DNA from: Heptranchias perlo
Lineage: Eukaryota
Length of the DNA stretch: 64,000 bases
Assembly: GCF_035084215.1 (NCBI RefSeq)
Contig: NC_090336.1
Coordinates: forward strand, 29,326,001 to 29,390,000
Direction: 5' to 3'
Part shown: piece after piece, positions 36,508 through 60,871 of the stretch
Layout: every line of letters starts with the position of its first letter
Numbering within the stretch: position 1 is the first letter of the stretch
Notes under the pieces: generated by a model
Told to the model about the DNA's origin: nothing
Database searches by the model: none
What the model saw: the letters and a program-made list of their open reading frames with translations, nothing else
Position numbers and translations under genes: made by a program

Positions 36508-36824
36508 TCAAAATTGAAGCAGGAAACTCCGTTCTATAGGTGATGTGTTTGAACTTTTCGGAGTAACTTTAATCGTGTATTTCACTTGATCATCATCGGC
36601 ATTTGCAATGAAAGTTAATTCTGTGAACTTGAAATATGCATACTCGACGCAGTCTTCCATAGTCACTCCACTTTTGTCATTTGGCTCCATTATTGCCTGG
36701 CCTCTGTACCATTCTACCTTAATATCTTTTGGAAAATATGCCCTTATATAACAGCATAGAGTCACCTCCTTTCCTTGTTTAGGGCCTGAACAGCATATGA
36801 TTTTTGGTACAACAGGAGGGGTTC
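36508..36824 (-). CDS. Ig C1-set-like exon 5 (last), IgSF membrane protein
   Basis: Acceptor ttctacttcatttcag| in phase 1. (G)TPPVVPKIICCSGPKQGKEVTLCCYIRAYFPKDIKVEWYRG...ELTFIANADDDQVKYTIKVTP...PIERSFLLQF*. C1 hallmarks TLxC, FPxxIxVxW, YxxxV; F-strand Cys replaced by Ile. Confidence 0.85.
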
Positions 36825-37149
36825 CTGAAATGAAGTAGAAAAGACAAGTTTTGGTCATGCAATATATTAATTTGTGTACTAGCTTAGCGCACACTTCTTT
36901 TAATAGTACTTTTATACTTGACATTCATTCAGCATTGCTTTCAGTTTGTAATTCTTACAATTATCCAAAAATTAATATATACATTTTTTCGCTGTAATCA
37001 GGTTGTTAACCGTTAGATTAACAACAACTCCTGGAAGTTCAGGCTCCCCAGGGCCAACTATTGTTTATATACAAGTTTTTAGCTCACACATTAATATTGC
37101 AGTAATAAAGCTACTCACATTGGACTGGAGCTACTTAAAAAAAAACACA

Positions 37150-37535
37150 TTTCTCCTCTTCTGAAGCCACTGCCTATAATGGCAGAGAGTTCCACAGGCA
37201 CTGGCCACCTTCCAGTAATTCAACTAAGTGGATATTCTACACAAGTGCCCAAAGACAAAGTGGGGCAGTCTATTCATCTGTGGAGGGAATCATATCCAAA
37301 CCTAGTCACGTCCTTACCCAATGTCTACAAATGTAGAACTGCTAGCAGAGTCACCAGATAGTGATCAGGAGCAGGAACTCGAACTGATTTTCCCCCTCCT
37401 TAGTCCAGGTGCACTGAGGCCAATTGAAGTGCCCCAGTTGCTGAACCTCAACACAGATCAGAGATTGAACTTGGGTCCTTCTGGTCTCCATGGCTTAGTG
37501 CCATCTTGGATGGTGCCTTTACTGACTGGGCCATC
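37150..37535 (-). mobile_element. Ancient tRNA-derived SINE remnant
   Basis: Reverse complement starts GATGGCCCAGTCAGTAAAGGCAC...CCCAAGTTCAATC (A and B box like); strongly decayed. Confidence 0.45.
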
Positions 37536-37856
37536 GAGGAAATACATTAGGAAGTCATTTTAATACTGCAAGATTAACGCTATACTACAAAATCCTATTT
37601 TTCTTTTAAAAAATTATTTAACATGACCTTACTTGTCCAATTTCCCCTTCCCTCCCCCCACTCATTCTGTCATCTCCATTTTCTCTTTTTTCTACTATAT
37701 ATATATATCTAAAACATATATCCTGCTTTCTCTTTTTACTCTTTTGTTTTGTATTTTATCTTCATTGAGGTGAAGGAAATTAGTGCTGGAGAATGGTGTT
37801 AAGCATTTCCATGTGGAAGTTAGCAGGGTTAGATGGACAGTCAAGTTCCCAATAAT

Positions 37857-58000: not shown

Positions 58001-60022
58001 CAAATGCCTTTTGGAAGTCCATATAAATAACAACCATTGACATTCCGCTGTCCACTACTTTAATCACCTCTTCAAAAAATTCAATCAGGTTTGTCAGGCA
58101 CCACCTACCTTTCACAAATCCATGCTGGCTCTCTCTGATTAACTGAAAATTCTCTAGGTGTTCAGTCACCCTATCCTTAATTATAGACTCCAGAATTTTC
58201 CCCACAACAGATGTTCGGCTAACTGGTCTATAATTCCCCAGTTTCCCTCTCTCTCCTTTCTTAAAAGCGGAGTGACGTGCAATTTTCCAATCTCGAGGGA
58301 CAGTTCCTGAATCTAGAGAACTTCGAAAGATTGTAGTTCGGGCATCTGCAATGTGCTCACCTACTTCCTTTAAAACCCTGGGATGGAAACCATCTGGTCC
58401 TGGGGATTTGTCACTCTTTAGTGCTATTATTTTCTTCATTACTGTTGCTTTACTTATGTTAATTTGATCAAGTCCCTGTCCCCGATTCAATATTAGTTTT
58501 CTTGGCATTTCTGGCATGCTATCCTCTTTTTCGACTGTAAATACTGACGCAAAGTAATTGTTCAACATGTCCGCCATTTCCCCATTGTCAATGACAATAT
58601 CCCCACTTTCAGTTTTTAAGGGGCCAACACTGCTCCTGACCACACTCTTTTTCCTAATATAACTATAAAAGTTCTTCGTATTGGTTTTGATATCCCTTGC
58701 AAGTTTCTTTTCATACTCTCTTTTTGTAGCTGTGCACAAATTGGCTGCTGTGTTTCCTTAGCTCTATCTGTTTTGTGACCCTTTGTTGATCTTTGTATCT
58801 TTCCCATTTGCCAGGATCTGTGCCATTTTTTGCCTTTTTATATGCCCTTTCCTTATGTCTTATACTGTCCCTTACCTCTTTAGTTGTCCATGGCTGTTTT
58901 TTTTGGCAAGTAGAGTTCTTGCCCCTCAGGAGTATAATCCGATTCTGTATCACATTAAATGTTTCTTTAAACATTTCCCAATGATCATCAGTCGTTTTAC
59001 CCATTAACAGATTTGCCCAGTTTACTGTGGACAGTCTCTGTCTCATCCCATTGAAGTCGGCCTTACCCAAGTCTAGAATCTTCGCAGCTGACTCACTTTT
59101 TTCCCTTTCAAACACTGCATTGAACTCGATCATGTTATGATCACTATTGAATTGATGTTCACGCACAGTTAAGCCGTTAACTAAATCTGGTTCATTACTC
59201 ATTACTAAATCTAGTGTGGCTTGCCCCCTTGTTGCCTCTAGGACATACTGCTGTAGAAAACTATCCCGGACACACTCAAGAAATTCACTACCTTTCTAAC
59301 GGTTGCTAGTCTGCTTTTCCCAATCTATGTGAAGGTTAAAGTCCCCCATTAAGACCACTATGCCTTTGTTACACGCTTGTCTAACCTCTGCATTTATACA
59401 ATCTCGCACTTCACAGCTGCTGCCAGGACTCCTATATACAACTCTGTCCTGAGTGGTAGCTTCACCAGGTTGGCACCTCATTTTTAGTTACACCTGGTGC
59501 TGCTCCTGGCATGCTCTTCTACACTCATCATTGAACCAGGGTTGATCCCCTGGCTTGTTGGTAATGGTAGAGTGAGGAATATGCCGGGCCATGAGGTTAC
59601 AGATTGTGCTGGAATACAATTCTGCTGCTGCTGATGGCCCATAGCACCTCATGGATGCCCAGTTTTGAGCTGCCAGATCTGTTCTGAATCTATCCCATCC
59701 TCTGTGTGAAGACGGGACTTCATCTCCACGAGGACTGTGCGGTGGGCACTCCTACCAATACTGTCATGGCCAGATGCATTTGCACTACCCAGGGATAGTG
59801 ATGGAAGAGTCTGGGACGTTGGCTGTGAATATGGCTATGACAGGCTGTTGCTTGACTAGTCTGTGGGACAGCTCTCCCAATTTTGGCAGAAGTCCCCAGA
59901 TGTTAGTGGGGAGGACTTTGCAGGGTCGACTTGGCTTGCTTTGCCTTTGTCGTGTCCAATGTCTAGTGGTCTGATGCCGGGTGATCCGTCCGGTTTTATT
60001 ATTATTATGACTTTTTTTCGTG
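55038..60022 (-). mobile_element. Near-full-length family A LINE (internally deleted) interrupted by a CR1
   Basis: RT ORFs 56019-56735 and 55051-55614; APE start KVLPTNIWGLLPKLGEL at about 59900. ATTCT at 55033-55037 and 60023-60027 is a candidate TSD; the empty site is visible in the paralogue at about 52710-52725. Confidence 0.93.
56929..59446 (-). mobile_element. CR1 LINE (APE C-terminal half, RT, 3' UTR) nested in the family A LINE
   Basis: ORFs 59296-59481, 58711-59202, 57903-58739 (SQHGFVKGR.CLTNLIEFF, YMDFQKAFDKVPH) and 57138-57887. (CCTATGTT)n tail; host rejoins as gcatgtag|tcctgag, as at 51275-51292. Confidence 0.95.
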
Positions 60023-60769
60023 ATTCTGAACCTCTCTAGAGCGTTATACCCTTGGAAAAATGCCCAAACATTCATGAATTAAAATAGAGTTTTCTGAATT
60101 TTTCCATTCAACATCTGTTGTTAAAGAGCTCATTGGCAATATCTATTTTACATTGGAAACTGTCACCATTGCAGCCATCAACCTTTGACAAGTGCACTTG
60201 CATCAAGTTATAGGAAGAAGCAATGTCTTTCAAGATTAAAACACCAGATCAAGGTTATAACAAGCTCAAATGATACCCAATATTAGTGAGCAATTAAAGT
60301 TTTACTGGCGTCACACAACTGTGGAAACAAAATATGAAGACTATATGGATATGCTTTGTTTCAGAGATATTTGCAGAAGCCTTGTACCCACAGGTATTTA
60401 AGTATATACATAGTTTAATATGCAATATTTGTATATTAACATTTTAACATTTCCTGTCTGGATTCTTAACAAAAGCATCATTCCATTTCAATTAAACGAC
60501 AACTCCTTTATTAAAATAAGAGATGAAATTCAAGTGAATGTATTGACGAATTCATGTGCTAAGATCACCAATGTGATTGCACTCCAGTGCAATTTCAGCC
60601 CTGTAATGTATTTACTGTGTATGATTGTAGAGTATACAGTGTATATGTACTGTACTCAAGCCTTGGTCAGTGACAACCACACTTAAAAATGTAAAGCATA
60701 TTATATGAATTACATAAGACAACAGGTTACAGTTTTAACAGTTCTATTTATGAAGATCAACGACATTAC

Positions 60770-60871
60770 CTTTTTGATACTTTCTGAAGTAAAGGCAAAA
60801 TCCAGCAGCAAGCAATGCACAGATAACTGAAACTCCAATAATTGCTCCGATTATGACAATGCTGTTAGTCT
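60770..60871 (-). CDS. Transmembrane exon of the IgSF gene
   Basis: Acceptor tgtgtttttaattgcag|, donor AAAG|gtaatg, 102 nt, phase 1/1. xTNSIVIIGAIIGVSVICALLAAGFCLYFRKYQK: 24-residue hydrophobic helix with GxxxG, then a basic stop-transfer. Splices in frame to 54842. Confidence 0.85.

Follow-up and report, generated by a model that had tools for sequence, protein, structure and literature searches.

A B7-H6-branch gene of the shark Heptranchias perlo with a predicted cytosolic tail of C1-type immunoglobulin domains

On which side of the membrane would a chain of C1-type immunoglobulin (Ig) domains lie if it were encoded after, rather than before, a transmembrane (TM) segment? The question is raised by a locus of the shark Heptranchias perlo, contained in a 64,000-nucleotide (nt) stretch of contig NC_090336.1 (positions 29,326,001 to 29,390,000, RefSeq assembly GCF_035084215.1) that we refer to as the window. 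A TM exon is followed there, in transcript order, by five Ig-domain exons, Ig1 to Ig5. The answer that we consider probable is that the window holds the 3' two thirds of a gene of the B7-H6 branch, the product of which would cross the membrane once and then continue in the cytosol as four or five C1-derived domains, up to its C terminus. Window coordinates are used throughout, and all six exons lie on the minus strand.

The TM exon (60871-60770, 102 nt) is a symmetrical cassette with phase 1 at both ends and encodes (E)TNSIVIIGAIIGVSVICALLAAGFCLYFRKYQK. It is preceded by a pyrimidine-rich AG acceptor and followed by GTAATG. The Ig exons, all of them C1-set-like and 300 to 324 nt long, are Ig1 (54842-54519, 107 amino acids [aa] plus split codons), Ig2 (52508-52206, an open frame with AG/GT borders), Ig3 (47069-46770), Ig4 (40938-40633) and Ig5 (36824-36508), the last coding exon, with which the protein ends in ...ERSFLLQF. 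The first four carry GTAAG donors. An AG acceptor was found at each of the six exons and a GT donor at each of the five nonterminal ones, with phase 1 and open frames throughout. Splice context and reading frames thus bear out the six minus-strand exons, with their coordinates and phase-1 AG/GT borders, that a preliminary description of this DNA had proposed. Joined in one frame, the five Ig exons add 516 aa to the product of the TM exon, where about 520 had been expected.

The TGA stop codon of Ig5 (36510-36508) coincides with the end of the domain, where the other Ig exons place their donor. ATTAAA motifs at 36021 and 35989, which are 489 and 521 nt 3' of the stop, may be used as poly(A) signals. 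Reading through the TM-exon donor would add 13 residues, RKYQKGNVVDLHK, followed by a stop, and a short-tailed form produced in this way is possible on the basis of the sequence.

We then asked what kind of fold the five Ig exons encode. The Pfam C1-set family (PF07654) has a curated cutoff of 21 bits, and all five domains exceeded it (Ig1, 28.7; Ig2, 29.5; Ig3, 32.6; Ig4, 30.0; Ig5, 35.8 bits). Scores against the I-set family were 14.4 to 19.7 bits, under its cutoff of 23.7 bits in all five exons, and the only other Ig family in Pfam to pass its cutoff was "ig", for Ig3. FPxxIxVxW and YxxxVxH motifs were found in the window domains, the C-strand tryptophan was retained in all five, and the fold-defining residues were invariant across them. 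In an alignment of the five, the position of the F-strand cysteine was occupied by Ile, Ile, Ile, Met and Ile in Ig1 to Ig5, respectively. The B-strand cysteine was present in four; Ig4 had a serine there and was free of cysteine overall. A canonical B-F disulfide is therefore possible in none of the five, in agreement with the earlier view of them as C1-like domains without a disulfide.

An AlphaFold2 model of Ig1, the domain that was modelled, agreed with this assignment in being a seven-strand C1 sandwich (strands A to G), with a mean pLDDT (predicted local distance difference test) of 79.9. The top Foldseek matches of the model were beta2-microglobulin and the beta2 domain of major histocompatibility complex (MHC) class II, with a template-modelling score of about 0.65, and the ESM Atlas result for a window domain was a generic C1-set. 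Titin, the top PDB sequence match of Ig1, was rejected as a relative, the match being the sum of six weak partial ones.

To find relatives, we searched a profile made from the five exons against 1.84 billion representative proteins, which returned 566 matches at an E-value of 0.001 or lower. The top match, at 642 bits, was P0001 (XP_067849689.1, "uncharacterized protein [Heptranchias perlo]"), a protein of 761 aa in which a signal peptide, an IgV and an IgC1 domain, the TM exon, Ig1, Ig3, Ig4 and Ig5 follow one another. The translations of these five exons were exact substrings of P0001 (the TM exon at residue 314, Ig1 at residue 348), with the split codons as predicted from the junctions, and the hydropathy of the TM segment peaked at 2.91 over residues 317 to 335. 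Three of the five junctions foreseen in the preliminary description, 60770>54842, 46770>40938 and 40633>36824, are thus used in the public model, whereas 54519>52508 and 52206>47069 are replaced by 54519>47069, and the Ig2 translation is not part of P0001. The five tandem Ig domains foreseen at the same time are accordingly present as five intact exons, of which the public model uses four, skipping Ig2.

Ahead of the TM exon, P0001 has 313 residues, none of them encoded in the window. They comprise a hydrophobic leader, MAPRAGFYSAKTLLTLTAVTLLFSA, followed by a V-set domain (residues 99 to 199) and a C1-set domain (222 to 299). When the six-frame translation of the window was searched with the five-exon profile, no further Ig exon was found in it (the next E-value was 1.8), and a second search of the window, with a wider profile for which 543 related domains were used, again found no other. 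The V, C1 and leader exons must therefore lie beyond position 64000, which is where the ectodomain exons had been expected, and the upstream signal peptide and ectodomain on which the preliminary description depended are indeed present in P0001. About 64 residues of P0001 stand before its good leader, and the annotation may place the start too far upstream.

The best PDB match of the P0001 ectodomain was human NCR3LG1/B7-H6 (104 bits, E = 8.7e-29). The alignment spanned 196 residues with the B7-H6 chains 6yjp_C, 3pv6_A and 4zso_E, at 102 to 104 bits, and the scores were lower for TAPBPR (79 bits) and CD276 (67 bits). Of the candidate families put forward beforehand, then, B7-H6/NCR3LG1 came out ahead, and the tapasin-like alternative, represented by TAPBPR, fell behind it. 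P0001 also has the leader, IgV and IgC1 domains and the single TM segment after C1 that define this branch. Judged by its ectodomain, the gene belongs to the B7-H6 (NCR3LG1) branch of the B7 family.

The tail of P0001 consists of Ig domains only and is not of the human type, with an ITIM (immunoreceptor tyrosine-based inhibitory motif) as well as SH2/SH3-binding motifs. Pfam searches of P0001 and four relatives (P0032, P0007, P0011 and P0003) gave no PRY/SPRY (B30.2) match and found Ig families only, and no ITIM-like motif was seen in the five window translations, which were read by eye rather than scanned by computer. These results are consistent with the proposal that the tail is a chain of C1 folds and not one built on ITIMs or on their activating counterparts.

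Is the TM exon really part of the same gene as the Ig exons? The TM-Ig1 intron is 5.9 kb long and consists mostly of repeats. None of the sequencing runs listed was on record as RNA. We compared three of them, from one sample and guessed to be RNA, with positions 54806-60805, which cover this intron together with 36 to 37 nt of each flanking exon. The runs consisted of contigs of about 100 nt, with enormous depth on repeats and almost none on unique sequence. One contig of 218 nt (60567-60784) continued without a break from intronic sequence across the donor and into the TM exon. Because this contig crosses the TM-exon donor unbroken and the depth pattern is driven by repeats, we read the runs as genomic DNA, which is silent on splicing. 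The repeat-filled intron, and the lack of reads that join the TM exon to Ig1, would suit an arrangement in which two adjoining genes have been read as one, the TM exon ending an upstream receptor and the Ig exons encoding a separate secreted protein. We consider this highly improbable, since the TM-to-Ig junction, with a K-[VI]-[PSA]-P start, recurs in relatives from 20 species, the phases match, and the searches of the window found no further Ig-like exon (with no separate scan of the interval from 60770 to 54842 for a leader exon).

We looked across the relatives to determine how widely the layout is shared. The best 150 representatives were classified by a simple hydropathy rule together with the exon profile. 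An internal TM segment followed by at least two Ig matches was found in 82; 11 had a C-terminal TM segment only, as classical Ig chains do, another 11 had an internal TM segment with fewer than two Ig matches after it, and 46 were without a TM segment. The source names of 30 of the 150 were looked up. They came from 20 species of chimaera, sharks, ray, bichirs, coelacanth, lungfish, amphibians, turtle, squamates and alligator, with Callorhinchus, Heptranchias, Pristiophorus, Hemitrygon, Erpetoichthys, Latimeria, Protopterus and Alligator among the genera and two caecilian genes, two salamanders, six frogs, one turtle, one lizard and one snake among the further tetrapod entries. Four of them, the alligator, lizard, snake and Bombina proteins, bore the source name NCR3LG1. 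No mammal, bird or teleost was among these 30, which are a small sample.

In the relatives, the next domain starts 5 to 6 residues after the TM segment with the conserved K-[VI]-[PSA]-P, the tail comprises 4 to 16 domains, and the C terminus lies 0 to 12 residues past the last Ig match. The TM segment and the whole array are present in the Callorhinchus protein P0176 (UniRef V9K7L7), several residues of which differ from the genome-derived models; V9K accessions are, we presume, derived from the elephant-shark transcriptome. Comparison of these sequences indicates that the TM-then-Ig layout is ancestral for the family, the canonical members of which have seven to eight different tail domains, D1 to D8. 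Public gene models with this layout exist, mostly as "uncharacterized" proteins; the layout is real and conserved. No description of Ig domains after the TM segment, in B7-H6 or in any B7 protein, was found in the full-text literature searched. The layout may nonetheless have been described by Flajnik et al. (2012) or by Ohta and Flajnik (2015), the likeliest places for the structure of shark or Xenopus B7H6.

Some frog proteins (P0003, P0004, P0020 and P0022) and Erpetoichthys proteins (P0002 and P0009) represent related families, in which an ectodomain of the IgV-C1-C1 or C1 kind is followed by a TM segment and up to 16 Ig domains, in chains of up to 2,158 aa. Frog tails of that kind often alternate units with a cysteine pair and units without one, and in Erpetoichthys P0002 the pair was present in 10 of 11 tail domains.

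We next considered the topology of the tail. Of the 82 TM-then-Ig proteins, 71 were used for domain and cysteine counts, 11 having been dropped by eye because of a leader-like hydropathy call or a concatenated-looking model (P0028, P0041, P0059, P0060, P0067, P0068, P0071, P0073, P0111, P0144 and P0150). A further 16 proteins, mostly with truncated or unrecognized ectodomains, were dropped by eye before counting sequons and charges, which left 55. Within 12 residues on the N-terminal side of the TM segment, these 55 relatives had 78 lysines and arginines and 116 aspartates and glutamates; on the C-terminal side the numbers were 180 and 33. A basic C-terminal flank fits a cytosolic location of that side. 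N-x-S/T sequons numbered 168 in the ectodomains, against 97.0 expected from composition (a ratio of 1.73), and 212 in the tails, against 210.9 expected (1.005). In 11 classical extracellular Ig chains taken from the same match list, there were 271 sequons against 156.7 expected, again a ratio of 1.73. P0001 itself had 7 sequons before the TM segment (2.8 expected) and 1 after it (2.6 expected).

The cysteines differed as well. A complete canonical pair was found in 88 of 102 domains before the TM segment versus 214 of 441 domains after it, while the C-strand tryptophan was kept in 421 of the 441. In chimaera, lungfish and coelacanth, the cysteine pattern was C- in D1, CC in D2, CC in D3, C- in D4, C- in D5, -C in D6, C- in D7 and CC in D8, and that of reedfish differed at D1 and D8 only. 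Because the pattern of retention and loss is itself conserved, the pairs that remain are more than remnants. Taken together, charges, sequons and cysteines fit a folded Ig chain that would long have resided where glycosylation and disulfides are not under selection. A cleaved signal peptide followed by a single TM segment would place the chain on the cytosolic side, and the type I topology with a cytosolic Ig chain put forward in the preliminary description is supported by the leader and single TM segment, by the flanks of the 55 relatives and by the sequon counts; we infer it for the shark protein as well.

How strongly is the tail conserved, and how did that of the shark gene arise? When chimaera, lungfish, coelacanth and reedfish were compared in pairs, identity averaged 33% for the V domain and 39% for the C1 domain, and 28 to 43% for the tail domains (D2, 42%; D4, 43%; D5, 40%). 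By this measure, conservation of the tail domains matches that of the ectodomain, and the tail is under constraint. The five window domains matched D4 best in P0014, P0032 and P0016 and in most other comparisons, and D4 was without the F-strand cysteine in every species examined. Since all five match D4 best, the tail of this paralogue would have been built from one multiplied domain type, and the gene is, on sequence comparison, a lineage-specific paralogue with a tail of repeated D4-type copies. With a single repeated domain type that has no disulfide, this tail is a simple one.

Ig2 is the newest of these copies, a recent tandem duplicate of Ig1. The two are 88% identical in aa sequence, and the blocks 55037-54420 and 52720-52105 are 89.9% alike over 624 nt. 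Between the intron that follows Ig1 (54385-53500) and the one that precedes Ig3 (48275-47381), the match is 84.9%. Because both the exon block and the intron match, the exon was evidently duplicated in tandem together with its downstream intron. Between Ig1 and Ig2 we counted 18 changes, 5 synonymous and 13 nonsynonymous, giving a synonymous rate (dS) of 0.082, a nonsynonymous rate (dN) of 0.057 and a dN/dS ratio of 0.7. Among the nine pairs of older window exons, dN/dS was 0.16 to 0.52 in eight; it could not be computed for the ninth, in which dS was saturated.

These values bear on the idea that this copy belongs to a multigene cluster and is decaying or silent there, a gene with intact-looking exons that is either unexpressed or nonfunctional. 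RNA support is absent at the locus, the introns are filled with long interspersed nuclear element (LINE), Harbinger and satellite insertions, Ig4 has no cysteine at all, the Ig1/Ig2 ratio is 0.7, and the tail is reduced to a single domain type. Decay of this kind would, however, have to coexist with six open frames that have kept all six AG acceptors and all five GT donors, with the low dN/dS ratios of eight of the nine older pairs, with a stop codon at the usual C-terminal position of the family and with fold-defining residues that are invariant in all five domains. We therefore regard it as improbable.

Several observations weigh against a cytosolic chain produced from this locus. Isoforms that lack precisely the TM-homologous exon are predicted in three species, Hemitrygon, Microcaecilia and Bombina: one of the seven isoforms in Hemitrygon akajei (X6) is without the 38 aa of the TM exon, 37 aa are missing from X3 of Microcaecilia unicolor relative to X1, and 34 aa are missing from X2 of Bombina bombina relative to X1. 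The same domains may thus also work outside the cell, in TM-less and presumably secreted forms. About half of the tail domains of the relatives keep both cysteines, as would be expected of extracellular domains too, and D2, D3 and D8 have kept the pair over about 450 million years. The three sequencing runs, with their genomic-like contigs, contained no 60770>54842 joint, and there is no transcript support at this locus. P0001 is itself a predicted model, the first 64 or so residues of which look like an over-extended start, the TM calls came from a simple hydropathy rule and not from a trained predictor, and the Ig1/Ig2 dN/dS ratio does not show constraint on Ig2.

The strongest of the competing explanations takes the working product to be TM-less and secreted, a V-C1-(C1-like)n chain whose array lies outside the cell; the membrane form would then be a minor or nonfunctional by-product, or a gene model that fuses two isoforms. 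It would account for the predicted isoforms of the three species. All exons are in phase 1, so skipping the TM exon keeps the frame, and reading through its donor yields nothing but the short 13-aa tail and a stop. The cysteine pair present in 214 of the 441 tail domains, conserved domain by domain, also suits such a chain. The sequons do not, being at chance in the tails (1.005) and 1.73-fold enriched both in extracellular C1 arrays and in the ectodomains of the family; these counts argue that the tail was shaped somewhere other than in the extracellular space. An incomplete cysteine pair in 227 of 441 tail domains, versus 14 of 102 ectodomain domains, points the same way. The TM exon is moreover present in 82 of the 150 representatives and in six of the seven Hemitrygon isoforms, and P0176, presumably of transcript origin, has both the TM segment and the array. 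On balance we think a mainly secreted product unlikely, and we prefer the membrane protein with a cytosolic Ig chain.

The TM-less Hemitrygon isoform (P0187, XP_072905590.1) bears the source name "hemicentin-1-like", and its six TM-containing sister isoforms are named "uncharacterized"; automatic naming thus hides its kinship with them.

Comparison with known systems shows where the predicted protein is familiar and where it departs. Classical C1-set domains (Ig and T-cell receptor constant domains, MHC alpha3 and beta2 domains and beta2-microglobulin) share with the shark domains the Pfam profile, the motifs and the fold. The classical domains precede the TM segment, whereas the shark tail domains follow it and have replaced the F-strand cysteine in all five cases, and classical extracellular chains are enriched in sequons whereas the tails of the shark gene family are not. 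The muscle Ig domains of titin and obscurin form cytosolic tandem chains of the I-set, with no need for disulfides and with neither signal peptide nor TM segment. The shark tail resembles them as a long tandem Ig chain of predicted cytosolic location, and differs in being of the C1-set and in having a leader and a TM segment.

Butyrophilins are B7-related proteins of the order IgV-IgC-TM-B30.2, in which a folded cytosolic beta-sandwich exerts inside-out control. The likeness to the shark gene lies in a B7-type ectodomain joined through one TM segment to a folded beta-sandwich in the cytosol; butyrophilins have a single B30.2 domain, whereas tails of the shark type are chains of 4 to 16 Ig domains without B30.2. 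To our knowledge, nearly all work on B7-H6 concerns the human protein, a stress- and tumour-associated ligand of NKp30 whose tail is regarded as short and motif-bearing. The tail of human B7-H6 is about 170 aa long and Gag-like. Human B7-H6/NCR3LG1 has, like the shark gene, a signal peptide, an IgV domain, an IgC1 domain and a single TM segment. ITIM and SH2/SH3-binding motifs are described for the human tail (PMC8509619), whereas the shark tail is 415 to 516 aa long and made up wholly of C1-type Ig domains. The human ITIM/SH2/SH3 tail may be mammal-specific rather than family-defining.

For the expression of this copy, its receptor and the function of its tail, we infer the following scheme. 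The signal peptide, IgV and IgC1, the exons of which lie outside the window, would form the extracellular part, and one TM helix with a basic stop-transfer flank would be followed by a chain of C1-derived beta-sandwiches made on the cytosolic side, the domains of which have lost the canonical disulfide and kept the fold-defining tryptophan and the core. NKp30-type receptors would be the ones to which the ectodomain is displayed. On the cytosolic side, the Ig chain could bind proteins or pair with itself and, as a scaffold, govern clustering, trafficking or display from within, in the manner of the cytosolic B30.2 sandwich of butyrophilins, on which this part of the scheme is modelled. In-frame skipping of the TM exon would yield a secreted form of the same chain. 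Extended to the whole family, the scheme becomes tentative: C1-set domains, a hallmark of extracellular adaptive immunity, might have a second, ancient role inside the cell, the ancestral B7-H6-type natural killer cell ligand of jawed vertebrates might have had a conserved cytosolic C1 chain whose domains pair or bind cytosolic partners and gate display, mammals might later have swapped this tail for a short motif-bearing one, and skipping of the TM exon might switch the product between membrane ligand and soluble decoy.

If a conserved cytosolic C1 chain is the nonmammalian state, the C1 set is not exclusively extracellular, and the ancestral ligand would have carried a large intracellular module. 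Inside-out control, so far known for butyrophilins, may then be both ancient and common in the B7 family. Should the TM-less form be the working one instead, the gene family would consist of long secreted B7-type chains, which are likewise undescribed in the literature searched.

The introns of the gene contain several mobile elements. An intact plus-strand open reading frame (ORF) of 366 aa for a DDE_Tnp_4 (Harbinger-type) transposase (42431-43531, 113 bits) lies in the Ig3-Ig4 intron, and a Myb/SANT-like ORF on the minus strand (45385-45864) lies near it in the same intron. Pieces of LINE reverse transcriptase (RVT_1, 126 and 59 bits) are found on the minus strand in the Ig2-Ig3 intron (49681-50877) and the TM-Ig1 intron (55051-59481), and contigs of LINE repeats reach enormous depth in the sequencing runs. 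The Ig4-Ig5 intron contains a G-rich array of 41 copies of a 21-bp unit (38154-39028), which gives rise to long spurious ORFs of 220 to 344 aa on both strands. Outside the gene, a 45-bp tandem array (3621-6653) extends over 3 kb with 66.5 copies and 95% matches. A 24-bp satellite (AATCACAGGAATAAGATCACAGTG) occupies 14.5 kb at 7638-22160, with about 605 copies, 94% matches and a strong AT skew, and begins about 14 kb beyond the 3' end of the gene.

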